This document shows, piece by piece, positions 1 to 21,100 of a stretch of DNA of 21,376 nucleotides (position 1 is its first letter; every line of letters starts with the position of its first letter). The position numbers and the translations under genes are program-made. The notes under the pieces are model-generated. The model was not told the origin of the DNA. It worked only from the letters and a program-made list of their open reading frames with translations, and did no database searches. This DNA is from Ginkgo biloba (taxonomy: Eukaryota; Plantae; Ginkgophyta). The DNA lies in the NCBI GenBank assembly GCA_024626585.2, contig JANKJI020000004.1, positions 97,990,748 through 98,012,123 of the forward strand, in the 5' to 3' direction.

Positions 1-105
1 ATTATAGAGAGATGGTTTGAAGAAAAAATGAGTAGCATTTATGTCCAATAATGGTGTCCTTTATCCCCTACACTATTTGGCTTATATCTTGATAAAAATG
101 AACAT
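1..105 (+). mobile_element. Degenerate non-LTR retrotransposon (LINE) reverse-transcriptase fragment
   Basis: 43-102 translates VQ*WCPLSPTLFGLYLDKNE, matching the LINE RT motif GV(K/R)QGCPLSPxLF with an in-frame stop at a conserved position. Confidence 0.65.
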
Positions 106-779
106 TATTATTAGTGAGGTGTTAATTTATCGAATTCTTACAATATGAATATCTAGTATAATAACAATGTTGCATACATACGTGGTTTCTTCAAAGATTA
201 GATTAGTTGATTCATATGGTAGAAGAAGTTTGAATGTATAAATATCTTTAGATAGACTACTTATCGAATCCTAACTAATAAATTTGTATGGAGAGAAGAA
301 TGAGTGGAGGGTGGAAATATTTCTTTGAAATAAATCAAAAAATACAAAATTTTGGCTATAATGAAAGAAAAATGTCTGGTGCAACATCCTAGCGATCCTA
401 ATTATCTCCTATGACTATTAAGAGTGGGAAGGTAGTATTTTACTTAAGATGTAGAAGGAATTAGAACAAATCTAAAAATAATTTATCTTAATTATAAAAA
501 ATATAAAGATCATAATTTTATACCACATCTACCTCTTCAAAGCTAGTGTAATCGTTGTAGAATCTAAAGAACTAATGAGATGCTTTATATATACGACAAG
601 GAAAAGGAAAATTAATAATGATAGAATTCTAGATTTCACATATATATAGGTAGTGAGATTTACCATAGAAAAAAATGAGGGTGAATTAAGGGCAATGCAN
701 NNNNNNNNNNNNNNNNNNNNNNNNNNNNNNNNNNNNNNNTGAAATTAAGAAAGTACATTGATAATAAGGTATTGAGAAA

Positions 780-1260
780 AATACTGGATTCCAATATCTT
801 TGTTCACCAAAATATTAATTATATAAAGTACTAAGTTGGAAAAATAAATAAAATGTTTTCATGATTAGAACGAACGTTGATGACATGCTAAGTGAAAATA
901 GGGTATGGAAAACCCACCAATTCCATAAAACAAAGCCACATACTAATCATGTAGTACATATAAAGTAGAATATGAACAACACACCCTTTTAGAGTACCTA
1001 GATATCCTAAATATCTTAAATAAATTTTGAGACATTGAAACCAAAAAAAATAACATACTAATCTTACTAAATACTAGAAACATTAGTATATTAGAAAGNN
1101 NNNNNNNNNNNNNNNNNNNNNNNNNNNNNNNNNNNNNNNNNNNNNNNNNNNNNNNNNNNNNNNNNNNNNNNNNNNNNNNNNNNNNNNNNNNNNNNNNNTG
1201 AAATAATTCCTTATGCAAGTATCAAGATATCATAGTCATCACTCCCTTTGATGTATTGAC
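780..1260 (-). mobile_element. Possible highly decayed Ty1/copia RT-RNaseH relic
   Basis: Short minus-strand peptides occur in copia order: QYIKGSDDYDIL (~1225-1258, cf. RYxKGTxDYGIxY), KRVCCSYST (~965-990, cf. KKQxxVALST) and NPVF (~790, cf. NPVFH). The matches are weak and interrupted by a gap. Confidence 0.25.
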
Positions 1261-3124
1261 CGGTTAATAAAAATCAAATGGTTAATCCTCAAGCATTAAG
1301 TAATAAATCATAAATGTTTATATGTTATTTTCCATATTTAGAGTGAACTATATTAAAAGCATAACTATTATCTTCTTCATAGACTAGTATCCTTTGATTA
1401 TGAATCATAATGTGAGGATTGAATGCATTAATATAGGTGATAAGATCTTGATCATGCAAGGTATATATAAAGCAAATATAATTACTTCCTTGAAAAATAA
1501 GGTAATCTCTTAGCATGAGAAATGGAATTCTTCTTTGTTGATTTCTAGAGTGTTGGCATTATAAAGATATAGACAAAGATTTAGCAGATTTTCAAGAGGT
1601 ACATACTTAGTAGTTCTTAGTTTTTGTTTTGATTTTTTGCTTCATATGCAGACCATTTGTTTTCTCTACTTTAATCTCAATTATCATGGTTAGTGAACTT
1701 TGCATATCCTCTTCTAGTTTTACCTTCTAAAGTGAACAATGTTTATCATGTCTCTAATTGTAAGATATGTTATTGATTATTGCATTATCACCTTAGTTTT
1801 ATTCTATTATATTAATCAAGGTATTCAAGTGACTATCATTCATAACCTCTTTTTTTTCCTAATGCTCTTACACACCCGTATCATGGTGTTCCTTATTTAT
1901 GCTATCAATTACTTATTTTTAAACTTCACACTTATCATATTCAACAATATATCTTTTAGCATGGTCTTCTTATTAGTTGACACTAATTACTTTATTTTTC
2001 TCATGATTCGTTTTCTTATTTATGTCAATGCATTCCTTAACTATGATATTATTTACCTTTCACACTACTTCATACTTATCATCTTTAATGATATATTTTT
2101 CTTGATGGTTTAGTTAACTATTATTTTGCATTATGATAATAGTCAATCAAAAACTTATTTAGAGTTTCAATTACATAGATTAATTCATGATCTATGAATA
2201 TAAAACATATTTCATAATAAACTAATCAATCACATATAATTAATAAATAACATGTTACAAGCTATCATGATTGAAAATTTCTTTCANNNNNNNNNNNNNN
2301 NNNNTTTCATTACTTTCAATCAACTATTGGTAATGAGACCACATAAATCAAGATCATGTATAACAACCTATTTTAATTAAAAAAATCATCAATTATTTTG
2401 ATATAATCCATGGTGAATATATAAAATTCTTTTGTTTATATAGGAAAAACTTCCCCTTATTGCAGGGGGATAACCTCTTTCTTGATCTTTGTCTGTAGTG
2501 GATGACTTAGAATCTTAATTAATGATGTATTTATCTTTTNNNNNNNNNNNNNNNNNNNNNNNNNNNNNNNNNNNNNNNNNNNNNNNNNNNNNNNNNNNNN
2601 NNNNNNNNNNNNNNNNNNNNNNNNNNNNNNNNNNNNNNNTTCCAATGTGAATGTGTCCTTCAAAATTTATTTATTCATAAAAATAATCCAATCGTTTATG
2701 GTAATCATTTCAAAATTCTTGTTTTTGCTCATAGGCCTTAGCATCGTACTTGAATAAGGGTATGCCTTTAACTACTTTATAATCCTTTATTATATTTATG
2801 CATATTATATTTTCATTATCATCCATTTATATTGTCCAGGTATTATTCCTTTCTCTAGGATTCCAATAATGTTGACTATTCAATATATTCACCATTAAAC
2901 AATATATATTTATGCCTTTATGCTTTTTATGTCTTGAATTCACTCTTATGATAAACAACCTTACACATATTATTTTAATTTATACTATAATATTCTTTTG
3001 AAATTGGAATATTTTAATTTTAACTATATATTTAAAAATTTATGAAAAGAATAATTAATTTTTATAACATTTGGACCACATTGTTACTGCAAACATGTTG
3101 CTTACTTCTATCACAATTAAGCCT

Positions 3125-4973
3125 ATTATCTTCTCCCTTCTACTTCCTTCATGTGTTCTATTGTGCGCCCAAATCTCTTGCTCAACATTCTAGTTGGTGG
3201 ATTCATTAATTTCATCCAACCATCCTCCTACTTATTTCTCCTGTCCTTGTGTTTGAACTCACTAAACTCCTTTTTCCACTTATCCTCGATGGATCTCCTC
3301 TATCTCTATTTTTCTTCCTCTCATGTATGCTCAAAATCCTTAGCGCCAAAGTCTCCCACTCTTGGATTTGGTTGGTGAGATCCTTTACTACTCCCTATTA
3401 ATTTCCTTATGGTCTAATATGGTCCTCCATCTTCCTCATAGATCCTTCTAGAGATACACATTTAAGTCTCCTTCTTAAATGTGGTATGGTAAGGACATGG
3501 ATCCCTCTCCTTAGAATTACACGTAGGCTCCATCACTTAGATCCGCATCAATATTATTTAATTACTCACACCTTGGTTTTGATAGCACATGTATCAACTC
3601 TATTGGCTCTTTAGGGATCTTCTCTCTTGCTCGAACTTCACCTTTGTCACCTTTGGGCATGAAATACCCAAATTCTAAACTATGTCTAATCCTCCAACCT
3701 AAGTCTTTAGACATGGGACTTCCTTCCATCATAACTACTTGCATATTTAGGTCTACGGGCACTCAAACCTTGCAACCTGCATCATACTCTAATGCCTCAA
3801 ACTCCTAAACACCTGAAAGCCCAAAATATATCTTCTTTTGTCAACACTTAGATGCGAGGCCTCTATCAACCACTCTTTATTTGTTGGCATAGGTCTACTC
3901 CCTCTCTTCAAGACTTTAGATGTGTAGCCTAACCACTAACTACTCTCGATCCTCTAAGAATTGATAAAATGTCTCCAATCTCTCTCACATGGCTATCATA
4001 GCTGATTGTGATAAGATTGGGGATGCCCTTACATCATCCTCCCATTCTTATAAAATTGTGTATGTGCTCTTGTTCATGCTTTTCTTCAACTCCTATCACA
4101 TCTATTCATCCAACTCCTTCAATCCTCCTACCATGCTTTATACACTGCTCTTCAATGGATATATTTTTCTACTTCTCCTAATGCCTACAACTTCTCTAAT
4201 CTTTTTCTTGTTCCATTTTTAGTTTATGTTCTTCATCTTCTAGAACCTATTCCAATTGCTCTATTAGCATCTTTATCTTAATATCTCCACTCCCATCTGT
4301 AAGTACTTGTAATAATTGCATCTCTATATCCTTCGATTGATGAAGGTTGTATGCATGATGACTCTCCACCCATTCATTCACTCCATCCATATGCTCATCC
4401 ACCTCATCTGTATGTTTTTCTTTTAGCACAACCACCTCATATTTATTCTCCATAAGTAATTCCATGTCCAATACCTCCTTCTCATGAGCTATGATTAAGT
4501 GATCACCACCACCTATAAAACTATCAAATGGGCAAAAGTCCTTATCAACTTTTGCCTACTCCCTTTGATCATTTTCTTAGCCTTCCATGGTTTATTCGCT
4601 TACCTACCTTGGTATGTTAGTTGAACTCTCCATAGGTTATTTGCTCAACTCCTTTGTGTTGTATGTCCAACCTTCTTGGTCGTTCATCACCCATTCCTTG
4701 GGTTTTTTTCTAACCTCACTTAGTTCGTTCATCCAACTTCTTGTGGACCATTCATTGATCTCCTTCTCAACTTCCTCATTTTTCTACAATCTATGCTCCC
4801 TAAGATCTCCATTGGCATAGTCGCATCCATCACCATCATTGGATCATGTTAAGGGAAAAGACCCATAAAATCCGAACTCATAGTAAGGTGACATATGTTG
4901 CGCTTCTCGCCTCTCTCAAGGATCCCCACGGGAAAATCATGAGCATACCAAAGCACTCCATGATCATGACAAA
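3125..4973 (-). repeat. Degenerate coding-like interspersed repeat, copy A (probably TE internal region)
   Basis: 3125-4033 is colinear with 5473-6364. The + strand is strongly pyrimidine-rich and the - strand reads as stop-ridden E/K/R-rich peptide. No domain recognised. Confidence 0.7.
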
Positions 4974-5073
4974 NNNNNNNNNNNNNNNNNNNNNNNNNNN
5001 NNNNNNNNNNNNNNNNNNNNNNNNNNNNNNNNNNNNNNNNNNNNNNNNNNNNNNNNNNNNNNNNNNNNNNNNN

Positions 5074-6364
5074 CTCCCATCACTCTTTTTTTCAAGCTCT
5101 CTCTCAACTTCCTTGTATCTATTTTAATCCTTGTCTTCTTCTTCCTTTGTGTTATCTCACAGTTGGCGATTTGCATTATACTCCTTCATCCTCTACTTTT
5201 CTCTAGAATTTCCTCACGTTCAATGATTTGCTCCTCTTCTATTACTTTCACTTAGGTTGCCTCACATTCGATAATCTACTTATTGTCCTCCTTTGGCTCA
5301 TCTATATCAATTCTTCTCCTCCTATATGACCCTCTATGTCTCTCCTCAATACTCCTCTTTTTTTCTCTCACTAGCTCACTCTATTGACTTCTACCCACTT
5401 CACTATGTTGCATCATAATAGGTGATCTACACTTAGGATCCCAACTCCCTTCACATTCAACATTGTTTTCCTTTTATATTCTCCCTTATGCTTGCTTCAT
5501 GTGCTCCATTGCACGTCCAAATATCCTATTCAATGTTCTAGTTAGTGGATCCATTAATCTCATCCAACCATCCTCTTGCTTGTTTCTCTTAGCCCTGTGT
5601 TTGAATGCACTATACTCATTCTTCCACTTGTCCTTGGTGGCTCTCCTTTATCTCTATTTTTCTTCATCTTATGTGCATTTAAAATCCTTAGTGCCAAAGT
5701 ATCCCACTCCTAGCTCTTATTGGTGAGCTCCTTTAATTCTCTCCATTAATTTCCTTATGGTCCTCCATCTTCCTCTTAGATCCTTCTAGAGATATGCATT
5801 TAAGTTTGCTTCTTAAATGTGGTATGGCGAGGATATGAATCCCTCTCTTTAGCATTACATATAGGCTCCATCACTTAGGTCCACATAAAGAGCATTTAAC
5901 TACTTGCACCTTGGTTTTGACATCACACGTGTCAGCTCTATTGGTTCTTTGCAGATCTTCTCTCCTACTTAGACTTCACCTTAATTACCTTTGGGGTTGA
6001 AATACCTGAACTCAAAACTATGTCTAAGCCTCCAACNNNNNNNNNNNNNNNNNNNNNNNNNNNNNNNNNNNNNNNNNNNNNNNNNNNNNNNNNNNNNNNN
6101 NNNNNNNNNNNNNCCACACTCCAATGTCTCGAACTCCCAAACAATCAAAAGCACAAAATGTCTCTTCTTTTGATAAGGCTTAGATGTAGGGCCTCCATGA
6201 AACACTCTTCATTCTTTAGCTTAGGTCTTCTCCCTCTCTTTAAGACTTTATACATGCGGCGTAACCATCATCTACTCCCGATCCTTTGAGACTTGACAAA
6301 ATGTATCCAAGCTCTCTCTTATGACTATCATAACTGATTGTGATAAAATTGGCTATGATCTTAT
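5074..6364 (-). repeat. Degenerate coding-like interspersed repeat, copy B
   Basis: Direct-orientation homolog of copy A. ORFs MCSIVRPNLLLNILVGG.. and MCSIARPNILFNVLVSG.. align. Shared strings include CTTCTTAAATGTGGTATGG, TAGGCTCCATCACTTAG, CACCTTGGTTTTGA and CTGATTGTGATAA. Confidence 0.75.
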
Positions 6365-9300
6365 ATTAGTTAGAGAGTGGGATTAGTTGGAGATAAAGAC
6401 ATAAATGGGTAAAATGTAAAGAACATAGAAGGAAAGAGATAAGGGATTTATTTGTTTATGCATGCTATTTATTTTAGATTGTACGACTAAGGTTGAACTA
6501 CTCTAGTACCACTTAGAGCATTCTTGGTAGGGTGGCTCTCAATAATGAGAGTTGAATGCTAAATATAAATTGGTAAAACCAAATATATTGAATTAATGAG
6601 TTAAAAATATATGATGATGATATATATTATGAGTTTATGAGTTTATGAGTTATAAAGGTAACATAGGGTTAACATGATTAGGTNNNNNNNNNNNNNNNNN
6701 NNNNNNNNNNNNNNNNNNNNNNNNNNNNNNNNNNNNNNNNNNNNNNNNNNNNNNNNNNNNNNNNNNNNNNNNNNNNNNNNNNNNNNNNNNNNNNNNNNNN
6801 NNNNNNNNNNNNNNNAACCATTTAGAAACAAAAATTAAAATACAGATGCTGATAAATCATTTAATTCCTACAACCATACAAATTTGTCAAGGCGCTAAAT
6901 ACACCAACTTGATAAATAATCTAATGGATGTGTTAAGAACTGGCATCTCATTTGAGAAATGGACTACATGGGGCCTTTTTGGCCTTATGAATTATCAAAT
7001 ATGTTGTTGTTTTTAAGATATTAAATTATATCCCAACATGATAAGATTTTTACTTATTTGCTCTATTTATGGATGATTAAGAGGATTTGATTTGCTCTCC
7101 TTATACTTTGCCTTCAATAAATTCTCAAACATGTCCTTTGTAACTAAAGAGGAATAATTTCAAACAAATTCTCACTTAGTATAATAATGAAGTACTCTTA
7201 TTTTTAAATAAAGCATAATAGAGCTAGCATAGATATATAAGCATTTATAAGTACATATAAGAAAATGATAGTTTATGTTTTCTTTTCTTTTATATTCAAT
7301 TTTAAAATGTTAAAGTACTCCATTGTTACCTAATCTAGTTTGGCTTCAGATGGATTTTGTAAGAAAAATTCTTTTGGCATATATTAATTGTCCCATTTTA
7401 TAAAAATACTTCTTACAAGTTTGTCTCTAATGTTGAACATTATGAAAATTGATGTGGTATTTTTATTTTATGTTGTTATTTTTCACTTTGAACTATGACA
7501 CTTATATACCACATAATACTTATTTTCTTTTGTATCTTAGATCCTTATTTTGTTGCTACAATAACACATAGACTTCACATATTAATGGTTTTCAATTTTC
7601 TTGTTTGTCCTTTACATAAAGGAATGGTCATTACTTATATATGATTAAATAAAATAATAGTGGTTATAAACTTATTAAATTTCATTACTTCGTAAACAAT
7701 AAGTTATGACCTGTTAATAATGCTAAACTTTATCTTTTGTCTATTAGCTATCCTAATTAGAAAGTTTGATTTGATTTATTGATTGGCTTTTCCTACTTTT
7801 AGGAAACTATACAAGAGGCTTAATAATGTAAAATTTAAANNNNNNNNNNNNNNNNNNNNNNNNNNNNNNNNNNNNNNNNNNNNNNNNNNNNNNNNNNNNN
7901 NNNNNNNNNNNNNNNNNNNNNNNNNNNNNNNNNNNNNNNNNNNNNNNNNNNNNNNNNNNNNNNNNNNNNNNNNNNNNNNNNNNNNNNNNNNNNNNNNNNN
8001 NNNNNNNNNNNNNNNNNNNNNNNNNNNNNNNNNNNNNNNNNNNNNNNNNNNNNNNNNNNNNNNNNNNNNNNNNNNNNNNNNNNNNNNNNNNNNNNNNNNN
8101 NNNNNNNNNNNNNNNNNNNNNNNNNNNNNNNNNNNNNNNNNNNNNNNNNNNNNNNNNNNNNNNNNNNNNNNNNNNNNNNNNNNNNNNNNNNNNNNNNNNN
8201 NNNNNNNNNNNNNNNNNNNNNNNNNNNNNNNNNNNNNNNNNNNNNNNNNNNNNNNNNNNNNNNNNNNNNNNNNNNNNNNNNNNNNNNNNNNNNNNNNNNN
8301 NNNNNNNNNNNNNNNNNNNNNNNNNNNNNNNNNNNNNNNNNNNNNNNNNNNNNNNNNNNNNNNNNNNNNNNNNNNNNNNNNNNNNNNNNNNNNNNNNNNN
8401 NNNNNNNNNNNNNNNNNNNNNNNNNNNNNNNNNNNNNNNNNNNNNNNNNNNNNNNNNNNNNNNNNNNNNNNNNNNNNNNNNNNNNNNNNNNNNNNNNNNN
8501 NNNNNNNNNNNNNNNNNNNNNNNNNNNNNNNNNNNNNNNNNNNNNNNNNNNNNNNNNNNNNNNNNNNNNNNNNNNNNNNNNNNNNNNNNNNNNNNNNNNN
8601 NNNNNNNNNNNNNNNNNNNNNNNNNNNNNNNNNNNNNNNNNNNNNNNNNNNNNNNNNNNNNNNNNNNNNNNNNNNNNNNNNNNNNNNNNNNNNNNNNNNN
8701 NNNNNNNNNNNNNNNNNNNNNNNNNNNNNNNNNNNNNNNNNNNNNNNNNNNNNNNNNNNNNNNNNNNNNNNNNNNNNNNNNNNNNNNNNNNNNNNNNNNN
8801 NNNNNNNATGGGATTAAAGCTAAAAAAAATTATGAAGAGCAAAGAGGCATGTGATCTTCCTTTATGCTTTCAAATCCTTTATAATGACCACGTACTTATC
8901 TTCATAACAAAAAATGACTTCTATGATTATTCCATCTTCACATTCCCTATGGTTTGAACCAAATTAGGGTCTCCACATTCCCTCTGACTTGAACGAATTT
9001 AATTGTGCTTGCCAAGCAATTTGTCCTATGGTGTTAAGACTAGTTGTGTTATGTTGAAAAGTGATATGACTCAATAATAATCAAACTAACCACCATTGAC
9101 TAATTGAACTAAGCCCAATCAATAATAACACTAATATTAAGTGGTATATATGAAGAATGACAATTTTTGCATGTCCCCTTTAAGGTTGTATACAAGAGAA
9201 ATTTAGTTGGCTAGTTAGGTATACGATAATCATGGTTTATGGTGGTATTCATGTAATGAACAAAGGTGAGGCCATGTGTACATATGATATAAAATGCACT

Positions 9301-10591
9301 AATGAGAGCGAATTTTAAATCTCTTACTTTGACTACAACTAAAACTCAAAAAGTAAAAGGCCAATTATTGTTCTTCTATGGAAGAATCTTTCTCATATTA
9401 CAAAATATTATGTTGCCATTTGCTTATAATTGGCTTCTATCTCATCCCGCCAATTCAAGAACCAAACTTCACACCTTGGCTCTAAAAAAGTTCCATGGAA
9501 AAGATACCTACTAATACAACATTGAATGACTCAAATCCTATTTGGCCTTTGATGCTAACAATACTTATTAACAAAAAAAGATATTAAGTTTTGAAATGTT
9601 TCATTACCTTATAAACAAACCAACAAAACTTATACTCCAAGTAAAAAATTTCTAGCCCTCAACCTACTTTGATAATTTAAAAAAGTTATAGGAAATAAAC
9701 AAATAATTTTACAATTGAGCCTCAAATGAGTAAAATTAATACGCAAGGTTGTCCTGATACACACCTTGGTCAATTTACCACACGTTTCATTTTAAGGGTT
9801 TGCCTTGAATATAACTAGTTGTTATCAAGATGTTAAAGAATGCTCCCCTTCATATAGTAACACGAGAGACTAACTTTTTATAAAATTAATATTTTTCAAA
9901 GACCATACCTTCTTTTGAATTATTTAGATTTCTTATTAGCGTTTATAAACAAATAAAATATTTGGTGCACTTGTTTGACAAGTGAANNNNNNNNNNNNNN
10001 NNNNNNNNNNNNNNNNNNNNNNNNNNNNNNNNNNNNNNNNNNNNNNNNNNNNNNNNNNNNNNNNNNNNNNNNNNNNNNNNNNNNNNNNNNNNNNNNNNNN
10101 NNNNNNNNNNNNNNNNNNNNNNNNNNNNNNNNNNNNNNNNNNNNNNNNNNNNNNNNNNNNNNNNNNNNNNNNNNNNNNNNNNNNNNNNNNNNNNNNNNNN
10201 NNNNNNNNNNNNNNNNNNNNNNNNNNNNNNNNNNNNNNNNNNNNNNNNNNNNNNNNNNNNNNNNNNNNNNNNNNNNNNNNNNNNNNNNNNNNNNNNNNNN
10301 NNNNNNNNNNNNNNNNNNNNNNNNNNNNNNNNNNNNNNNNNNNNNNNNNNNNNNNNNNNNNNNNNNNNNNNNNNNNNNNNNNNNNNNNNNNNNNNNNNNN
10401 NNNNNNNNNNNNNNNNNNNNNNNNNNNNNNNNNNNNNNNNNNNNNNNNNNNNNNNNNNNNNNNNNNNNNNNNNNNNNNNNNNNNNNNNNNNNNNNNNNNN
10501 NNNNNNNNNNNNNNNNNNNNNNNNNNNNNNNNNNNNNNNNNNNNNNNNNNNNNNNNNNNNNNNNNNNNNNNNNNNNNNNNNNNNNNNNNNN

Positions 10592-10644
<53 letters not shown>
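10592..10644. repeat. (TC)n microsatellite abutting an assembly gap
   Basis: Perfect TC dinucleotide run seen directly. Confidence 0.97.
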
Positions 10645-10648
<4 letters not shown>

Positions 10649-10740
10649 ATACATAGAAGGTAACCTAAGAGTAAAGTCACCTCGGCATTGAATTTGGTAC
10701 CTATGTAGGGGTAGTTAACATAGACATTAGGTCCTTTCAT

Positions 10741-10806
10741 ATGTACATATACATACCCACACGTACACACGCACACACCTACACCTATATCCATAAATAC
10801 CTACAT
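10741..10806. repeat. Degenerate (CA/TA)n low-complexity tract
   Basis: atgtacatatacatacccacacgtacacacgcacacacctacacc... Confidence 0.55.
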
Positions 10807-11623
10807 GGATTTCCATTTGTAACTAGGCTTGACAAAGTCCATGAACCTAACCATTTAAGCTACTCCATTTTGTTCATGTACACAACTTTACACTTAAAGA
10901 CTACCAATGGAGGGAGAGAGACATGGAGGCTATGATTATATTTGGGTTCAAGTTACATATAAACAAAGCGATGCCTAGGGGAATACATATACACACAGTT
11001 TTCATTTCATGGCAAAAACATCAAACATCTTGCTAAAAATGTGTGTACAAGGTAAAAGCAGTTACTAAGGGCGTGCTATATTATACAATTTAGGGGTTGA
11101 TGGTCCCATGGAAATACGCAAAAAGCTAATGTCCTCTTTTAGTTATTTTCATAAGGGGACAATAGCTACAACTAATGAAACCCCAATGGATCTATATGAT
11201 GATGCATCCATCAAGGGGCGATACAAAGATGATCTTTCTTATGAATTTCCTACAATAATAGCCACCTTTTGACTGTGAATCCATCTGATCAACTCATTTA
11301 AGAGAAGTTTATACCGCCAATAACTAAACAACTCTCACAATTGCCCTAAAGCACTAACTCTTTTGGAGAATACAAAAGTTCCCCTCCATGGGACCTCTCT
11401 CCCTCTCAAATTTCCACTAGAAGAATTAATAATCCCTACTCACCTTGGGAGCTCAACTCACCCCTCACCCCTCACCCCCTTGTCCACTTTTTAACTAAAA
11501 ACAGTAAAGGAACCTGTTTACCGAGAAGACAGCCGAATATGCTCTGATTTGGTTGTCGACGGTCAAATTTTTAAGGTAAAAAAGACGATAAAATCGAAAG
11601 TAAAACAGCTCACTGATTAGGGT

Positions 11624-11640
11624 TATATAAATATATAAAA
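11624..11640 (+). promoter_or_regulatory. Tandem TATA boxes of the importin beta core promoter
   Basis: TATATAAA at 11624-11631 and 11632-11639, 40-50 nt upstream of 11672/3, where homology to the mRNA-derived copy begins. A telo-box-like TTAGGGTTA overlaps the 5' edge. Confidence 0.6.
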
Positions 11641-11671
11641 ATATTTTTAGAGATGATAGATAAGGTTATAG

Positions 11672-11813
11672 CGCACAGATCGAGCTTTAGAGTGTATCTC
11701 TTCTTTTGCGTCTGGTGCGAGGGTTTCAGAGCTCCGAGATCGGGAGCTTCAGCTGCTGTGGATTGCATCGGCCTTGCTCGATTTGTTCGTCTCTGGAATC
11801 GGTGTTCAAAGAG
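11672..11813 (+). other. KPNB1: Non-coding 5'UTR exon 1 of an importin beta-1 gene
   Basis: CpG-rich, ATG-free segment ending in a consensus donor GAG|GTAAGT (GT at 11814). A copy of exactly this segment is joined to the importin coding sequence at 13327/13328. Confidence 0.85.
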
Positions 11814-11995
11814 GTAAGTTTTAAGCTCTGTTTGCTTTAATGTGATGAGCTACATTGCAAAGTGCCCTGGATGTTGTTTATAAAAGATTTCTGATCTATG
11901 AGCTGGATTAGTGAACAAGACGATCGTGAAAGTTTGTTTGCATATTTTGGAATTCAAAAAGATTGTGGTCGAGCCCGTGTTTGAATCAGTAACTG

Positions 11996-12003
11996 TAGGG
12001 TTT
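11996..12003. promoter_or_regulatory. Telo-box (TAGGGTTT = AAACCCTA) in intron 1
   Basis: Exact match to the plant telo-box near the 5' end of a housekeeping gene. An 8-mer can occur by chance. Confidence 0.35.
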
Positions 12004-12606
12004 GAATCGAGAAAAGGACGATATTTCTCCTTATCGTTGAANNNNNNNNNNGGCATGGTAAGGGAGCATCATACGTATGTTGTGTAGGGCAGATTGTGGG
12101 GTGCAGTTTTAGATGGATTTTTTGGGTTTACGGTTGGGTTTGATTTGAAAAGGGAAAGTGGCCGATGATTTAGCTTAAAACTATGTTAAATCTTCTAAAT
12201 AGCGATGAATCTGAATGTTTGGAATGCGGCCGTAGCTTTTGTCTGTTATAGACATGCTTTCTGATGATTGTATTGGTTTCTGTGGTCATGAATATGCTTG
12301 ATTGTCCNNNNNNNNNNNNNNNNNNTTTAAATTTCGAATGGGGAAAATAGCTCAGGTTTGGAATCGAAAGGAGGAGCAAATGATCTGCTTTTCGGGTCTG
12401 TGTGAATTTGGATAGAATAGCGATAATTTAGCGTATTTAGCGTATTTGTTGCCAGGCTGTAGCTACTTAGTAGTGTTAACGTGTCCAAATGATATTGATC
12501 ACCCTTTTCCGCATTTCTAGTCAGTTTTCTTAGCATGAAATTAAGTTTCATTTAGCTATAGTGTGATCCCCATTTTATTGCCGGATTAATGTTTTCGAGA
12601 TGTATT

Positions 12607-12706
12607 NNNNNNNNNNNNNNNNNNNNNNNNNNNNNNNNNNNNNNNNNNNNNNNNNNNNNNNNNNNNNNNNNNNNNNNNNNNNNNNNNNNNNNNNNNNNNN
12701 NNNNNN
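12607..12706. other. Exactly 100-N (likely unsized) assembly gap between exon 1/intron 1 and the retrocopy block
   Basis: N count is 100, the same as gaps at 1099, 2540, 4974, 15963 and 20201. Confidence 0.9.
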
Positions 12707-13187
12707 GAATAGAATTAGATTGAGCATCAACGAGAATAGATTTTGGTTAATTATGGTAAAAAATCTTATAAATTTTGACTTTTTTGAATGATATTCATGG
12801 AGGGAACGTTCTCTTTTGTTATTATTTTTTTATAGCTATGATCCATTTGGAGACTTGGGCACTCATTAATTTTTTGAATATACCTACGAAGGAAGTTTTT
12901 CGGTGGGCAGAATCACAAGGTTTTTGAGTAGGTGTAGGCACTCTAATTTATATGGCTGTCATCATGGTGTACCTTGCTATTGAAGCATGTAACTTGATAG
13001 AAATATCGTGCATGATAACAATAATACTCGATGCATAGAAGTAATGAGATAATGGCACATAGGAAAAGTTGGAGATGCAAATGGAAGAAAATGGCATTCA
13101 AAACAAAAAGAATATTGAAGGAAGATAGAGAAACCCATGAATAAATGAGTAGGTCGCTTGATGGAAAAAGAATTCGAGTAAAAGAAT

Positions 13188-14865
13188 GCACAAATCGAGT
13201 TTATAGTGCATCTTTTCTTTTGCGTCTGGTGTGAGGGTTTTAGAGCTCCGAGATTGGGAGCTTCAGCTGCTGTGAATTACATTGGCCTTGTTCGATTTGT
13301 TTATCTCTAGAATTGATGTTCAAATAGGTCAAAAAATAGCCTTGGAGGAAAAACAAATCCTTAGTAACACACAATCGGTTGATGGTGGAGTTCGGAAGCT
13401 TGCTGAGGAGAATCTGAAACAGTTTCAGGATCAGAATTTGCCGGCTTTTCTTATATCCCTTTCTGGCGAGCTTGCAAATAATGAGAAGCCCATCGAGAGC
13501 CGTAAACTGGCTGGTTTGATTTTGAAGAATACTCTAGATGCTAAGGAACCACACAGAAAGGCTGAGTTAGTACAGAGGTGGATCTCCTTAGACAGCATCG
13601 TAAAGAACCAAATTAAAGGATGCTTACTGCAAACCCTGTCCTCGCCTAATTCGGATGCACGCTCTACTTCCGCACAAGTTATAGCAAAGATTGCTGGTGT
13701 TGAGTTGCCGCAAGGTGAGTGGCCGGAACTCATTACAACATTATTGCTAAACATGGGTGGCCCGCAAATGGAACCACCTGTTCACCTTAAGCAGGCCACC
13801 CTAGAAACTCTTGGATATCTCTGCGAGGAAGTTTCATCAGAAGTTCTTGCTCAGGATCAGGTGAATTCCATTCTCACTGCCGTTGTGCAGGGTATGAATT
13901 CATCTGAGCGTAACAATGATGTCAGGCTTGCTGCCACTCGAGCTTTGTATAACGCTTTGAATTTTGCTCAGACAAATTTTGACAACGATATGGAGAGGGA
14001 TTATATCATGAGAGTAGTCTGTGAAGCAACTTTGTCTCCTGAACTGAGGATTCGGCAAGCTGCCTTTGAATGCTTAGTGTCTATATCTTCAACATACTAT
14101 GAGAAGCTCGCCTCCTACATGCAGGACATATTTTCTATCACAGCGAAGGCTGTGAAAACAGATGAGGAGCCTGTTGCCCTTCAAGCTATTGAGTTTTGGA
14201 GCTCTATTTGTGATGAGGAAATTGATATACAAGAGGAATATGGAGGGGATTTCAGTGGGGATTCAGATGTTCCGTGCTATTATTTTATTAAACAGGCACT
14301 CCCTGCTCTTGTCCCGATGCTGTTGGAGACCTTGCTGAAACAAGAAGAGGATCAGGATCAGGATGAAGGGGCTTGGAATCTGTCTATGGCTGGAGGAACA
14401 TGCTTAGGCCTTGTTGCCAGAACTGTTGGAGATGATGTTGTCCCTCTTGTAATGCCTTTTGTTGAAGAAAACATATCAAAGCCTGATTGGAGATGTCGAG
14501 AGGCAGCCACTTATGCCTTTGGATCAATTTTGGAGGGTCCTTCACCAGATAAACTTACTCCTCTTGTGAATGTAGCTCTCAGCTTTATGCTCAGTGCTAT
14601 GAAGGATGAGAATAATCATGTTAAAGACACAACTGCATGGACCCTCGGGAGAATATTTGAGTTTCTCAATGGTCCAACAATGGAGACTCCCATAATCACA
14701 CAGTCAAATTTCCCACACATTCTATCAGTGCTAATTGAGAGCATGAAGGATGTGCCAAATGTTGCCGAGAAAGTCTGTGGTGCTCTGTATTTCCTGGCGC
14801 AGGGGTATGAGGATGCAGGGGCAAGCTCCTCCCCACTCTCTCCATTTTTTCAGAACATTGTTCAC
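13188..14865 (+). pseudogene. KPNB1: Processed (spliced-mRNA-derived) partial copy of importin beta-1: exon 1 copy plus ~aa 1-510
   Basis: 13188-13327 aligns to exon 1 (17 substitutions plus 1 indel) and continues directly into GTCAAAAA-ATA-GCC-TTG-GAG, with no intron. ATA (13336-13338) sits where the ATG of MALEVTQ is expected. Homology stops at ..FFQNIVH. Confidence 0.75.
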
Positions 14866-14877
14866 TGTGAACAATAA
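13336..14877 (+). CDS. KPNB1: Importin subunit beta-1 N-terminal ORF (IBN_N plus HEAT repeats); start codon lost, 3'-truncated
   Basis: Uninterrupted frame with diagnostic motifs RKLAGLILKN, WPELI, KQATLETLGYLCEE, VALQAIEFWSSICDEE, the acidic loop EEDQDQDEGAWN, and DWRCREAATYAFGSILEGP. It stops at TAA 14875-14877 in non-homologous sequence. The ORF-track start at 13282 is TTG, not ATG. Confidence 0.85.
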   Translation: MALEEKQILSNTQSVDGGVRKLAEENLKQFQDQNLPAFLISLSGELANNEKPIESRKLAGLILKNTLDAKEPHRKAELVQRWISLDSIVKNQIKGCLLQTLSSPNSDARSTSAQVIAKIAGVELPQGEWPELITTLLLNMGGPQMEPPVHLKQATLETLGYLCEEVSSEVLAQDQVNSILTAVVQGMNSSERNNDVRLAATRALYNALNFAQTNFDNDMERDYIMRVVCEATLSPELRIRQAAFECLVSISSTYYEKLASYMQDIFSITAKAVKTDEEPVALQAIEFWSSICDEEIDIQEEYGGDFSGDSDVPCYYFIKQALPALVPMLLETLLKQEEDQDQDEGAWNLSMAGGTCLGLVARTVGDDVVPLVMPFVEENISKPDWRCREAATYAFGSILEGPSPDKLTPLVNVALSFMLSAMKDENNHVKDTTAWTLGRIFEFLNGPTMETPIITQSNFPHILSVLIESMKDVPNVAEKVCGALYFLAQGYEDAGASSSPLSPFFQNIVHCEQ

Positions 14878-15396
14878 AATCGTTTAATGTCAGTGGAATG
14901 AAATTCGATCGAGTCAATCAAATTGATCGAAGGGCAGATCGAGGTTGCTCGACTCTCATCTCCACGACCTCAATGCAAATGTGGGATTTTTTTCTAAATC
15001 GGTCTACAAACAATCTAGTTACAGTCACCTCAAAAAAACTCCTACATACGACGCACACCTCCCACGTGTCCTTCTTTGTTCAGCGAATCTCCAGCATACG
15101 TCTGCCTCTCCTACTTGACGTTTTTGTGTTTTTTTTTCTCTCTTTCACAGCATGTGGCTCCATGCACTTCCTCTCCTACACATGTCCTCTCAATGTCAAT
15201 CGGATCGTGTGCGCACTATAGCACGTGCAATCTAATCTCCATGGGTCTACTACGACGACTCGTCACGGTCGATTTGTTTTCCACTCTACGGTAGTTTATC
15301 TCAGAACCCAGGCCTCTTCTCAGATCTGGATCAATCTTCAACCTGCACACTCCTCTTCGAGATTAAACCCTATTCACAAGCACAAAACAGAAGACG

Positions 15397-15408
15397 ACTT
15401 TAATACAA
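15397..15408 (-). other. Degenerate tRNA-iMet primer-binding site
   Basis: The + strand reads ACTTTAATACAA versus GCTCTGATACCA (reverse complement of TGGTATCAGAGC): 8/12 match, and 3 of the 4 mismatches are G>A or C>T. It is followed by AA-TGTAAG. Confidence 0.5.
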
Positions 15409-15410
15409 AA

Positions 15411-15755
15411 TGTAAGCAATAAATGGGCCAAGAAAGAAGAATGCAATCACACAAGCAAAGAATAACACAGAGATTTAGGTGGTAGAATTAGTCTACCAAC
15501 AAATAAACAATTGAATTACTCAATACTTTGATACATAATGTGTACTATTGAACACGCGTATATACAAGCTTGCGCTTGTGCATGCTAGACACATGTCATC
15601 CCTACAGCGACTCCCTCATGGACCCTTATTCGTAACTAGGACTCACGACATTATGTCTTAACCCTATAAATGAATATAATGATGTACATTAAGTACAATG
15701 AAGTATACANNNNNNNNNNNNNNNNNNNNNNNNNNNNNNNNNNNNNNNNNNNNNN
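15411..15755 (-). repeat. Putative LTR (~345 nt; far end lies in the 15710-15755 gap)
   Basis: Starts TGT next to the PBS and has an A/C-rich + strand typical of a reversed U5. The PPT-like tract follows immediately after the gap. No partner LTR was seen in the window. Confidence 0.45.
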
Positions 15756-15837
15756 ACCCCTTCCTTAATTCCTCACCTTGTTTAAATAGAAAAGAGAGGT
15801 GACCTTGGTCTCCATGAGCTTTGGCTCTTCACATATT

Positions 15838-15962
15838 GTGACCTTTCACCTTTCGGTGACTCTTCAACTTCTAGTTACCCTTCACCTTCCAGTGCTTGTT
15901 CAACTTCTCATGACCATCCAAAGTTTGACAACCTTTCAACTATCAATGACCATTCACCTCTA
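15838..15962. repeat. Degenerate 18-bp tandem repeat, at least 7 units
   Basis: gtgacctttcacctttcg / gtgactcttcaacttcta / gttacccttcaccttcca / gtgcttgttcaacttctc / atgaccatccaaagtttg / acaacctttcaactatca / atgaccattcacctcta, then the gap. Confidence 0.8.
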
Positions 15963-16062
15963 NNNNNNNNNNNNNNNNNNNNNNNNNNNNNNNNNNNNNN
16001 NNNNNNNNNNNNNNNNNNNNNNNNNNNNNNNNNNNNNNNNNNNNNNNNNNNNNNNNNNNNNN
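15963..16062. other. Exactly 100-N (likely unsized) assembly gap between the retrocopy/LTR block and the second paralog
   Basis: N count is 100. Confidence 0.9.
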
Positions 16063-16097
16063 ATTTTTGGAGATGGGGCTATTGGGTCTAATTTTTG

Positions 16098-17548
16098 CCA
16101 ATGCTTCTTGAAACTTTATTGAAGCAGGAAGAGGATCAGGATCTGGATGAAGGTGCTTGGAATCTGGCAATGGCAGGGGGGACATGCTTAGGTCTTGTTG
16201 CTAGGACTGTGGGAGATGATGTTGTCCCTCTTGTGATGCCATTTGTACAAGAAAACATATCAAAGCAGGATTGGCGGTGCCGGGAGGCAGCTACTTATGC
16301 ATTTGGTTCAATTTTGGAGGGGCCATCACCTGAGAAGGTTAGTCCTCTTGTCAGCATTGCTCTCAGTTTCATGCTCAATGCTATGAAGGATGAGAATAGT
16401 CATGTCAAGGACACAACTGCTTGGACGCTTCGCAGGATTTTTGAGTTCCTCCATGGACCTACAATGGAGACTCCTATAATCACACAGGCGAATCTCCCAC
16501 TCATTCTCTCTGTTTTACTTGAAAGCACAAAAGATGTTCCGAACGTGGCTGAAAAAGTCTGCGGTGCCTTGTTATATCTTGCCCAAGGTTATGAAGACAT
16601 GGCAGGAAGCTCTTCTCCGCTCTCGCCCTTTCTTCAGAACATTATAGAGGCTCTTATTGTTGCTGCACGTCGAGTTGATGCTGGGGAATCTAGGCTTAGG
16701 GCCGCTGCATATGAGACACTGAATGAAGTTGTGAGATGCTCAACAGAAGAGACAGCTCCCGTAGTGATACAGCTTGTTCCAGTCATGTTGACAACCCTCA
16801 ATGAAACTCTGGAGATAGTGAAACTATCTTCAGAAGACAAAGAGAAACAAAATGAGCTGCAAGCACTTCTCTGTGGCTGCTTGCAGGTGATCATCCAGAA
16901 ACTGGGGACTTCTGAGTCTACAAAGTATGGGATAGTACAGTATGCTGATCAAATGATGAACATTTTCTTGAGAATATTTTCTTGTAGGAGTGCCACTGTC
17001 CATGAGGAAGCGATGCTAGCCATTGGAGCACTTGCATATGCAACTGGTGTGGAGTTTGGGAAGTATATGCAAGAATTTTATCGCTATTTAGAGATGGGTC
17101 TTCAGAATTTTGAAGAATATCAGGTCTGTGCTATCACTGTCGGTGTGGTTGGTGATATATGTAGGGCATTGGAGGACAAGGTGCTGCCTTTCTGTGATGG
17201 CATTATGACACAACTTCTTAAGGACCTGTCAAGTAATCAGCTACATCGTTCAGTAAAGCCCCCAATATTTTCTTGCTTTGGAGATATTGCATTGGCTATT
17301 GGAGAGCATTTTGAGAAATATTTGATCTATGCAATGCCTATGCTTCAAAGTGCAGCAGAGCTATCAGTGCAGTCTGCAGGCCCTGACGATGAAATGATTG
17401 AATACACTAATCAATTGCGCATTGGAATTCTAGAAGCTTACTCAGGGATTTTCCAAGGTTTCAAAAGTTCTCCTAAGGCTGAGTTGCTGATGCCTTATGC
17501 AGGTCACATTTTGCAATTCCTTGAGAGTATTTATCAAGGAAAGGACAT
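16098..17548 (+). CDS. KPNB1: Importin subunit beta-1 paralog, large coding exon, 5'-truncated (~aa 327-810)
   Basis: Open frame PMLLETLLKQEEDQD...VHEEAMLAIGALAYATG...LHRSVKPPIFSCFGDIALAIG...GKD(M), ending at donor AT|GTAAGA. An in-frame TAA lies at 16089-16091 and no importin homology is seen upstream of about 16096. Confidence 0.88.
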
Positions 17549-17745
17549 GTAAGAATCTTCCCTTTTTCATTTGGATGATTTTCTATTTAGCTTTTTCTTG
17601 ACATTAGTCTTCATTCGTGCCTTGTCTTTAGTGATTAAACTGTTAGATCTCTGTCTTTTGAATCCTATTTCAGACAAGGCATTCAGGGGTTATTATATGC
17701 ACCTGGGCTAGGTTCTCATTCACTTTGCCATGTGTGTTAATGCAG
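17549..17745 (+). other. 197-nt phase-2 GT-AG intron
   Basis: GTAAGA...TTAATGCAG, U-rich. Splicing restores GKD-M-DDQVTKAAIGVLGDLADTLG in frame. Confidence 0.92.
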
Positions 17746-17944
17746 GGATGACCAGGTGACGAAGGCTGCAATTGGTGTTCTGGGTGACTTGGCTGATACA
17801 TTAGGTTCAAGTGCTGCACCCTTGCTCCGGCAGTCTGTCTTTTACAAAGATTTTGTAGATGAATGTTTGTCATCTGACGATCAACATATCAAGGAGATTG
17901 CTGAGTGGGTCCAGATGACTGTCAGTCGAGTTGTTTCAGGTTGA
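17746..17944 (+). CDS. KPNB1: Importin subunit beta-1 terminal coding exon
   Basis: DDQVTKAAIGVLGDLADTLGSSAAPLL...IKEIAEWVQMTVSRVVSG* is the conserved C-terminus. The implied total length is ~875 aa, as expected for importin beta-1. Confidence 0.92.
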
Positions 17945-18175
17945 TTGTATCTGGGAAGTCTGGAAATGCATACAGTCATTTGGGTGCGTTGAGTTAAGGT
18001 GTCTGGGATTGCATACTTGTTGTCGTGTCAAATGATGATTCTGCATGAAGATTGCCAACATGGTTACAGGTCCTCAGGTATTTCAGAGCATCACCTTGAG
18101 AGTCAGGTTTTTGGCCAAGAGGATCTGGAAATCTAATCCCCGCCTCTGCTAACTTTTCATTTCCCCTCCCTTGGC

Positions 18176-18181
18176 AATAAA
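18176..18181 (+). terminator. Candidate polyadenylation signal AATAAA
   Basis: Canonical hexamer ~230 nt after the stop; another lies at 19131. Plant signals are loose. Confidence 0.3.
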
Positions 18182-21100
18182 ACACAGAATTGTTGCATTG
18201 CTTCAAGTCCTGCTTGTCAGCAGGCCTCAAAGGGAGCTCAAGCTGCATTCATGAATATGAAAGCAGTCCTTTATACTGTTGTCCTGTCAACAGTTAACAC
18301 ACATCCACCTTTCCTGCTCTTTGCGCTATTCACAGAAGCACCCAAGGCGTGCTTCAAATAAGAAGCAGTGATATCAACATTGCATCTTAAGAAAGGGAAA
18401 ATTCGCACTGCTTCTGCTTCTTTTGTAAGCCAACCATGCCATTTCTTGTGGTCTGCCAGAAACCATATGGCGAAGACTAATTAACACACATGTTTCTATT
18501 GCATCTACAAGGAAGCAGCAGTTGCTTTCCGAGGATCAATTCAAATGCAATGGCCATGGTCATCCACTATGTAGATCTGCCCTTGATTGTTTCTTTCCTC
18601 AATCTTTTTGCATCCTTCCTCCTTTTTCTAGTGGGATGGGCCAAGCGCTCACTATCCATTGCATTCTGTTTGCAATTCTAATCAAGCTTGCATGTGCAGN
18701 NNNNNNNNNNNNNNNNNNNNNNNNNNNNNNNNNNNNNNNNNNNNNNNNNNNNNNNNNNNNNCTCTTAATGGCAATCTAGGCCAAAGGGTGAGATTGGTCC
18801 ATCTTCTATCTGCCCACTTGTTTATGGCAATTTAGGCCGAAGGGCCATATACTGTTGTCGATGGATGGTTCTACTACTTTTTGATTGAAAGGTTTAGTGC
18901 ATCTGTGGATATCCAAGTCGTGCATCTTTATTATGGTACTCTTTGCATGGAATGATGATTCGAACCATGTCAGCAATCCTCCTGACTAGTTGGTCTCTGA
19001 TTGGTGCGAATGTAGTACAAAGGGTGTTGTTTTGCTATTCATTGACCTTCAGATGATCAAATTTAAGGGTTGATGAAGCAGCAGTCTTCATGTCTTCTGC
19101 TTCCTCATCTTGGAGGTCCATTTTGTACTGAATAAAGAAGTTTTGATTCGTATAGTGCGATTTGCACCCTGCTTCAAGCCAGGATGAGCTATTTGTATTA
19201 CTGTGTTGGTGGAAATTTGAGAAAGATTATGCTTTTGCTGTACAAACAGTCTCTTTGCAGTTAGTTTTAAATTGGTTTCCTGGTGTCATTGCTGTTAAGT
19301 GAATCTTAGGCCTGCTAGGTTCTCAAATGCATGCCTTCATTATTTGAAAGGGGCTTCTGGTAGAAATATCCTATTTTACATTGCATGAACTTATTCTACA
19401 CTTACCCTGCCAAAGTCAAGATAAAAAGGCACAAGGAAAAGATAAAGTACGAAAAAGAACCATGATGGTGGAGTTTGCCAGTGGGTTATACTATTCTGCA
19501 GTCATTCTTGTTTAGTTTCGTCTGAATGTGAAAGGAATTTCATTTTTATTGGAAAAAAGAGAGGAATTGTTGGAGTGTATACATCCCCAAGAATTTGAAT
19601 CTTCCATCATCTCCCAATGGATGGTAGAAGTTTGAAATGCGACTGCTCCTCCCGACAGATTCCTCCTTTCAAACTGAATTCAACATCACAATTCAATAGC
19701 AAAGAGAAAATTCAACGAACCTGCAAAAGTCCTCCATCTTGCTAGTTGTTGGTACAAGTATGTGAAGGGACAAGACTGAAAATTTAGAGCAAGAAAGAAA
19801 TAACTTTGGGAAAGCAAGCTTAGGATGGGATGTACCAATCATTATGCATAATACAATTATTCTTTCAATGGTAGACTAATTTTACCCTCCATATTTTCTG
19901 AGTTTTCATGTGCATGTCTTTAAGTTCTCTCCATTATTCTTTGTGTTCTCAATTTTCACAAAGTGATATGAATGATGATAATCATCTATCTAGTATTCTT
20001 TCAGTGAGAAAAGCCACCTGCTACGCAACTCCACAAAAGCCTACTCAAAACATCTAGTTGTTCTCCCAACGTGTCTACATGTTTTCCTGTGTAACTAATC
20101 AGGAATGTAGCTTAGAGTTCTGAACAAGCAACCTGGAAATTTTGTTATACAACCCTGCACCAAATGATAGCACGAGGAAAGATCCCTCTGAAGAGGGTTT
20201 NNNNNNNNNNNNNNNNNNNNNNNNNNNNNNNNNNNNNNNNNNNNNNNNNNNNNNNNNNNNNNNNNNNNNNNNNNNNNNNNNNNNNNNNNNNNNNNNNNNN
20301 CCAGCCACTCTGTTGCTTCTGGGTTCAAGCTGTGTTAAGAGTCCTTGATTTATTTTATGTTCTATTGTATGCGTATCATTCTGTCTGATGCTGCTCCTTT
20401 AAGGTTACTGGCTTGCCAGAGGCCTGTTCTGAAAGCATTAGTTGCACCAGAGGAAGAAAAGTGTTCATAATAAACATATTGGACTTTGCACTATTTTAAA
20501 AATCTCCATGGGCATCCTTGTGTATGCTTTCCACATGTTGCCAACATCACCTGTTTGGTCGGTTTTGAGGTATGGATAGTTCGTCCTGTCTGTCAGTGAG
20601 AATATATCCTTTCCAGGGAATAGGGAATAGATGTATAATCACACCCTGAGAGTAGAAATGTACTGTTCCAAATTGAATGAAAATCTTTTCCATTTTGAAA
20701 GTCAACTTAGTGAATATGAAATGACTAAAGCATGTAAGGGAACGAGGGATAACTTAGTTCATATATTGGCCCATTGAAGTTCATAGCACTAGAAGAATAA
20801 ATTTATAAATAATTAAAAAGATACCATTCAAATTAAAATAAAAGGATATTTCAAAACATACTTGTAGATATGGAATTTACACTCTACGCACTGAGCATCA
20901 AGAGATGACAAGTATCTCTCTATTATTTTTGATGTACAAGTACTCAAGTATTCAACTCCTCAAAATGTAGGTAATATCTTTGTTTGAAAATTGAAGTTGT
21001 CTTCCTTCTATGCAAAGTGCTCCTTGTCTAACTTGTCACATGCAAAGCTAGGAACAATTCTGTCCTTCAACACACTACCTGAATCAACAAAGCAAGCTAT

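Follow-up and report, generated by a model that had tools for sequence, protein, structure and literature searches.

Apparent nesting of an importin beta-1 retrocopy in its parent's first intron in a Ginkgo biloba assembly very probably reflects mis-assembly

Does the Ginkgo biloba importin beta-1 gene carry a spliced copy of its own mRNA inside its first intron? The question arises from a stretch of 21,376 nucleotides (GenBank assembly GCA_024626585.2, contig JANKJI020000004.1, positions 97,990,748 to 98,012,123, forward strand), referred to here as the window, in which an initial annotation made from the sequence alone had placed a spliced copy running to 14865 within intron 1 of its source gene. 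Three models had been offered for it: a retrocopy inserted in its parent's first intron, a trapped intermediate of intron loss mediated by reverse transcriptase (RT), and a distant retrocopy wrongly placed. We aligned four runs (X1, X2, X4 and the RNA run X14) to window positions 11640-17620 (5981 letters); X4 is a 2016 run from another sample and study, from which the Gb_ annotation may have been made. We conclude that the nesting is very probably a mis-assembly, with the real gene, Gb_35028, intact and a family of processed fragments lying elsewhere.

The 1.5-kb frame at 13336-14865 encodes importin beta-1: it matched Pfam PF03810, PF13513 and PF25574, giving an IBN_N domain followed by HEAT repeats in a protein of about 870 aa, the make-up of importin beta-1 (KPNB1). 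This frame was 98.6% identical to Ginkgo biloba Gb_35028 (99.8% between the protein of 13370-14864 and the Gb_35028 protein), and a second frame, starting at 16095, was 97.5% identical to Ginkgo Gb_04236. By sequence similarity, the window locus is the Ginkgo biloba importin beta-1 gene Gb_35028, for which an independent annotation gives an intact N-terminus and a contiguous reading frame. Looked up by exact match among public contigs, neither the 531-aa ORF of the window nor Gb_35028 was on record. The 5' part of the locus comprises the following features.

11615..11639, + strand: putative promoter of Gb_35028, with a telo-box-like motif and TATATAAA boxes (from sequence)
11673..11813, + strand: exon 1 (5' UTR) of Gb_35028, spliced to exon 2 in RNA contig X14 rec 7 and identical in X4 rec 21
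11814..12606, + strand: intron 1 of Gb_35028 minus its last 29 letters (X4 rec 21; true length 793 nt)
12607..12706, no strand: 100-N scaffold gap, a false join; in X4, 12606 is followed by 27 letters and AG, then by exon 2 from 13326
12707..13187, no strand: foreign, moderately repeated flank of the retro-fragment's own locus (many contigs at 85-90% in X2 and X4)
13188..13369, + strand: processed 5' mRNA fragment of Gb_35028, with the exon-1 copy, the junction 13327/13328 and the head of exon 2 (ATG>ATA)
13370..14864, + strand: Gb_35028's own exon 2, codons 12-510, fused chimerically behind the retro-fragment (X4 DNA, X14 RNA)

Land-plant importin beta genes share a layout in which an untranslated exon 1 is followed by a single coding exon of some 810 codons and then by a short last exon, as seen in a cycad-like locus (L003, 810 codons without introns) and in Amborella (L004). 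An intron-free frame of 1.5 kb is therefore normal for a plant importin beta gene, and only the junction between exons 1 and 2 can speak for a cDNA origin; we rejected the frame, which is the normal giant exon 2, as evidence of retroposition. Several observations concern the gene and its orthologues themselves. The 16-nt telo-box-like and TATA motif (window 11615-11630) was identical in the promoter of the cycad-like orthologue at L003. In the same 5' UTR intron, the acceptor used by the cycad-like transcript lies about 40 nt upstream of the Ginkgo-homologous one (L001:126 vs L003:4957). The 3' UTR region (window 17942-18570 and 18847-19194) was 72-78% conserved over more than 800 nt against cycad-like and Cupressaceae-like transcripts, and the public model of Gb_35028 has its C-terminus wrongly extended into this region, giving 961 aa instead of 875.

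Independent DNA contradicted the nesting. One 5397-nt contig (X4 rec 21) contains 11640-12606, then 27 letters ending TTTTTCACC, then 13326-14864 and a normal coding continuation to the 3' end. Its intron 1 is 793 nt long and holds no insert; the AG acceptor, GTCAG and ATG are intact, exon 2 is unbroken, and 260 nt, exactly the coding distance, separate 14864 from the equivalent of 16909. It was the one independent DNA contig spanning the intact gene, with 41% of X2 read. The 5' UTR intron of the cycad-like locus is about 780 nt long and its end is similar to the end of Ginkgo intron 1. RNA contigs X14 recs 7 and 9 represent a spliced, ATG-bearing, full-length mRNA, the frame of rec 9 being uninterrupted. 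These contigs show Gb_35028 to be intact, with exon 1, a 793-nt intron 1, a large exon 2, intron 2 and exon 3 encoding 875 aa, and, since X4 rec 21 and X14 rec 9 are both intact, nothing is nested in it.

Passage from 12606 into an acceptor and an ATG-bearing exon 2 is the very outcome that the initial annotation had named beforehand as speaking against nesting in intron 1. The checks it had proposed came out accordingly: continuity from 12606 to 12707 across the gap gave way, in independent DNA, to the 27 letters, the acceptor and exon 2; another exon 2 with acceptor and ATG was present in X4 rec 21; and an RNA junction from donor 11813 was found in X14 rec 7, which ends exon 1 and continues with CAGAAAATGGCC. 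A retrocopy inserted in its parent's first intron should be bounded by parent intron on both sides in real DNA. Only X1 joins 12606 to 12707, the window holds no remainder of intron 1 after the copy, and what follows the copy is the parent's exon 2 and then foreign DNA. This first model is refuted by the intact passage from intron 1 to exon 2 in X4 rec 21.

The one dataset that agrees with the window, X1, repeats all of its joints at about 77x with zero differences, 12606 meeting 12707 with no letters between. Its contigs bridge 12606/12707 and 13188-14865 at full depth, as would be expected if a genuine retrocopy in parent intron 1 were a private allele of the assembled tree. We consider such an allele very unlikely, X1 behaving as text derived from the assembly. 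The X1 contigs amount to 1.6 Gb at a flat 70-90x (ordinary runs, 6.6-7.8 Gb at about 9x) and are without the parental allele at 13363, 13368, 13369 and 14668. X1 also removes exactly 10, 18, 46 and 100 Ns; X4 and X14 are likewise continuous across the small gaps at 12042 and 12308, but depart from such an exact deletion (29 and 21 gap letters). X1 thus reads as the assembly with its Ns deleted, from which it appears to derive, and is not independent support; its flat depth, missing alleles and exact N removal led us to reject it as confirmation of the window layout. The private allele would further need five homozygous rearrangements in 6 kb, destroying both importin-beta paralogues, in a dataset that lacks the parental allele. 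The 1.5-kb frame is 99.9% parental against 14% decay in the first 182 nt, and it is not followed by a second exon 2. The fragment has its own locus in X2 and X4, and for other trees X4 rec 21 contradicts the private allele.

The exon-1 copy itself is genuine. Exon 1 at 11673-11813, ending at a GT donor, was confirmed as letters, and 13188-13327 is an 88% copy of it, with 17 substitutions and one deletion in 141 nt, a match (130 nt at 88%) far beyond chance. Most substitutions (14/17) are C>T or G>A, ten of those in CG or CHG context. The initial annotation had read this segment as a second copy whose homology ends at the donor and which runs into the importin N-terminus, and both the alignment and the RNA junction bear it out: homology to the parent halts at the donor and resumes as the importin N-terminus, in which the ATG has become ATA. 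The junction is authentic: past the shared GT, X14 rec 7 goes from exon 1 into CAGAAAATGGCC. The same exon 1/exon 2 junction occurs in a Cupressaceae-like transcript (L002), and X2 rec 16 spans the junction in genomic DNA with 94 and 80 letters on its sides. The copy starts within the transcript and carries neither promoter nor intron, and the cDNA (processed) origin proposed for it was right. Its 5' end corresponds to 11670-11673, 34-41 nt after a TATA box (TATATAAA), and coincides with the first letters of the cycad-like orthologue transcript contig L001. The position fits reverse transcription that ran to about the cap site, and the earlier placing of this end near the cap is reasonable.

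The copy is much shorter than had been supposed. Against the parent, the window has 25 differences in the 182 nt at 13188-13369 (18 of them C>T or G>A) and one difference in the 1495 nt at 13370-14864, the latter by comparison with both X4 DNA and X14 RNA. Eight of the nine differences from 13326 onward fall in 13326-13369, leaving one for the 1495 nt that follow (Fisher p ~4e-24, exon 1 being counted in). Letter by letter, the window is a mosaic of a decayed copy joined to pristine parent exon 2. Of the spliced copy said to extend to 14865, 13188-13369 stands, and the remainder to 14864 belongs to the parent. The single difference, an A for C at 14668 (His to Asn) relative to parent DNA and RNA, is an allele or an assembly error. 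At its own locus the copy reaches about the equivalent of 13407-13411: X2 rec 16 covers 13234-13407 and then continues into 371 unrelated letters. Past 13440, X2 depth is zero and X4 is single-copy, so that no copy extends further; the fragment measures about 220 nt, not the overestimated 1.7 kb.

With its exon-1 copy, junction and pristine exon 2, the window superficially fits one-sided recombination, as in a trapped intermediate of RT-mediated intron loss whose cDNA recombined into exon 2 and was ligated into intron 1. A fresh cDNA, however, would match exon 1 and not be 14% decayed, 480 nt of foreign repeat separate the intron from the copy, and in X2 the decayed copy passes into non-importin DNA at 13407. 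Instead of a near-identical cDNA recombined at the native locus, we found 14% decay, foreign flanks of the copy's own in X2 and X4, and a gene intact in X4 and RNA; X4 rec 21 together with X2 rec 16 refutes the intermediate, to which we give virtually no credence. It is also highly improbable that natural gene-retrocopy recombination took place in the assembled tree, giving an allele of the parent locus whose exon 2 begins with an old processed 5' fragment in place of its own start.

Five false joints, including a swap with Gb_04236, lie within 6 kb of the window. Besides the gap and the fusion of the copy, the joints at 14854, ~16096 and ~17310 were absent from the independent runs, and they delimit three further features.

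14854..15709, no strand: foreign DNA joined to exon 2 at an 11-nt shared word, 14854-14864 (X4 rec 25, X14 rec 11)
16096..17309, + strand: middle of the paralogue Gb_04236, swapped in (99.8% to Gb_04236; RNA rec 10)
17310..17944, + strand: 3' end of Gb_35028, with exon 2 to 17548, intron 2 (17549-17745) and exon 3 to the stop

At the first of these joints, X4 rec 25 and X14 rec 11 have non-importin letters upstream of 14854, while in X4 rec 21 and X14 rec 9 the gene continues normally past 14864. The reading of position 14865 as the point where an LTR had inserted into the copy was rejected, as independent contigs put that DNA at another locus. In 16096..17309, 51/51 diagnostic residues are of the Gb_04236 type; the frame returns to Gb_35028 between 17286 and 17349, where these 51 residues of one type are followed by 12 of the other. 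The 17310..17944 piece is 100% identical to Gb_35028 over 80 aa, with 12/12 diagnostic residues and an RNA splice at 17549. Gb_35028 and Gb_04236 are old paralogues, the latter grouping with a pine protein. The second importin frame (window 16063-17549) is accordingly chimeric, with a foreign head, Gb_04236 from ~16096 and Gb_35028 from ~17310, and the reciprocal piece seems to lie in X1 rec 6 (7890 nt). Repeats were also seen in the window: a very high-copy one at 15440-15962 (summed depth in the thousands), probably LTR-retrotransposon derived, in which a degenerate 18-nt unit recurs in tandem at 15838-15894, and two decayed copies (78-84%) of a minus-strand repeat of about 900 nt at 3122-4034 and 5470-6366, probably gag-like retrotransposon remnants.

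In the scaffold, the pieces of the gene stand in their true order, from exon 1 with its intron through the 5' part of exon 2 to the 3' end, and foreign DNA trails behind each of them, as is typical of chimeric contigs that were ordered by homology. Extra partial copies exist at the switch points at 13370-13407 and near 17310. We infer an assembler path followed by homology-guided scaffolding. The assembler would have passed from the fragment into parent exon 2 through the near-identical overlap at 13370-13407, so that the fragment and 480 nt of flanking DNA came along in a chimeric contig; this contig would then have been given the place behind intron 1 that fits its exon-2 part, separated by a 100-N spacer. 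As a lead only, the assembly may be a short-read one finished against references (SPAdes plus Zanfona type). The third model of the initial annotation, a distant retrocopy wrongly placed, is thereby supported in a refined form, that of a fragment of about 220 nt fused chimerically to parent exon 2.

The decayed copy is real DNA at a separate locus, where X4 rec 23 joins it to the flank at 12946-13187 with zero differences (12946-13239), and X4 rec 24 runs through the flank, the exon copy and the junction at 89%. Sister copies share its features. At 13363, four X2 and two X4 contigs read A against the parent's C, and three of these six match the parent at 13368-13369. The alignments of these contigs stop near 13407-13411, and X2 rec 13 begins at the same 11673 boundary. 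We count these copies as "several", with 41-48% of the X2 and X4 runs read and some contigs perhaps being alleles. For the flank, Pfam searches with ten ORF pieces and an Rfam search of 11400-16100 gave nothing meaningful, and a metagenome scan with a degenerate exon-1 pattern gave no match. Additional importin-beta pseudogene pieces for window 17095-17411 occur in X2 and X4, differing at 19-32 positions and having a gap of one letter. Processed 5' fragments of importin beta-1 mRNA, old and methylation-decayed, do form a small family in the genome, which is ordinary for gymnosperms.

On the simplest reading, the spliced fragment of about 220 nt was captured once and then amplified within a repeat. 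We somewhat favour LTR-mediated capture, with amplification as a non-autonomous element, as the mechanism. A reverse transcriptase in an LTR retroelement would have switched template onto Gb_35028 mRNA and back at the mRNA 5' end, and the captured fragment (cap region, exon 1/exon 2 junction and first ~80 nt of exon 2) would have spread as a non-autonomous element. The family may consist of non-autonomous retroelements holding a capped mRNA 5' end through a template switch at the cap. Copies that share switch points and derived changes, as expected of LTR-mediated retrocopies, were found, though the contigs may include alleles.

For the origin of the fragment alone, there are two other candidate routes, jointly the less probable: a full-length LINE processed pseudogene that an insertion or deletion at ~13410 later cut and that was duplicated together with the flanking DNA, or a DNA transposon (Pack-MULE, CACTA, Helitron) that captured spliced mRNA. 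A 5' end at the cap is also expected from complete target-primed cDNA, frameshifted importin-beta fragments exist for 17095-17411 (X2 recs 19 and 20, X4 rec 26), and no LTR or gag/pol was seen in the 480-nt flank. DNA-transposon capture normally retains introns, which counts against that version. LINE copies are usually 5'-truncated with the 3' end kept, whereas here, among the features of a LINE-type pseudogene (poly(A), target-site duplication, 3' end), the 3' part is absent after ~13410. The copies also share both ends and a substitution, which is typical of re-mobilised LTR chimeras (PMC5131818).

The biological weight of the locus is small, as the nested arrangement does not exist and its real part is one of many processed fragments in gymnosperms. 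Its relevance is to quality control: the assembly fuses genes with their own pseudogene fragments and with paralogues. Before further gene findings of a mosaic, nested or chimeric kind in this Ginkgo assembly are believed, they need independent reads, and X1 should count as support for no finding in this genome.

Among known systems, plant importin beta-1 (KPNB1) genes differ in nothing from the real Ginkgo gene, which shares the 5' UTR intron, giant coding exon and short last exon of L003 and Amborella. LTR-mediated retroposition, as in maize Bs1 (Tan et al. 2016, PMC5131818), proceeds by a double template switch with secondary mobilisation; the fragment resembles its products in being a partial spliced mRNA with a 3' truncation larger than the 5' one and in having several dispersed copies with common switch points and derived substitutions. 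The likeness shown lies in the copies, a flanking LTR element, microsimilarity at the switch points and target-site duplications being further marks expected of such products; the fragment differs in having its 5' end at about the cap. Gymnosperm transposable elements commonly capture first and second exons of genes, and such captured fragments and processed pseudogenes number hundreds of thousands per genome (PMC13477047). The Ginkgo fragment shares their preference for these exons and their heavy CG/CHG decay, but is mostly 5' UTR and demonstrably spliced.

The layout in the window is also close to collapsed or chimeric short-read contigs ordered by homology: it switches path in near-identical overlaps between gene, pseudogene and paralogue, and has contigs placed by their largest part, fixed 100-N spacers, and joints absent from independent DNA and RNA. 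Nothing essential differs, the joint at the 11-nt shared word being below the usual k-mer and implying a chimeric read or a finishing step there.
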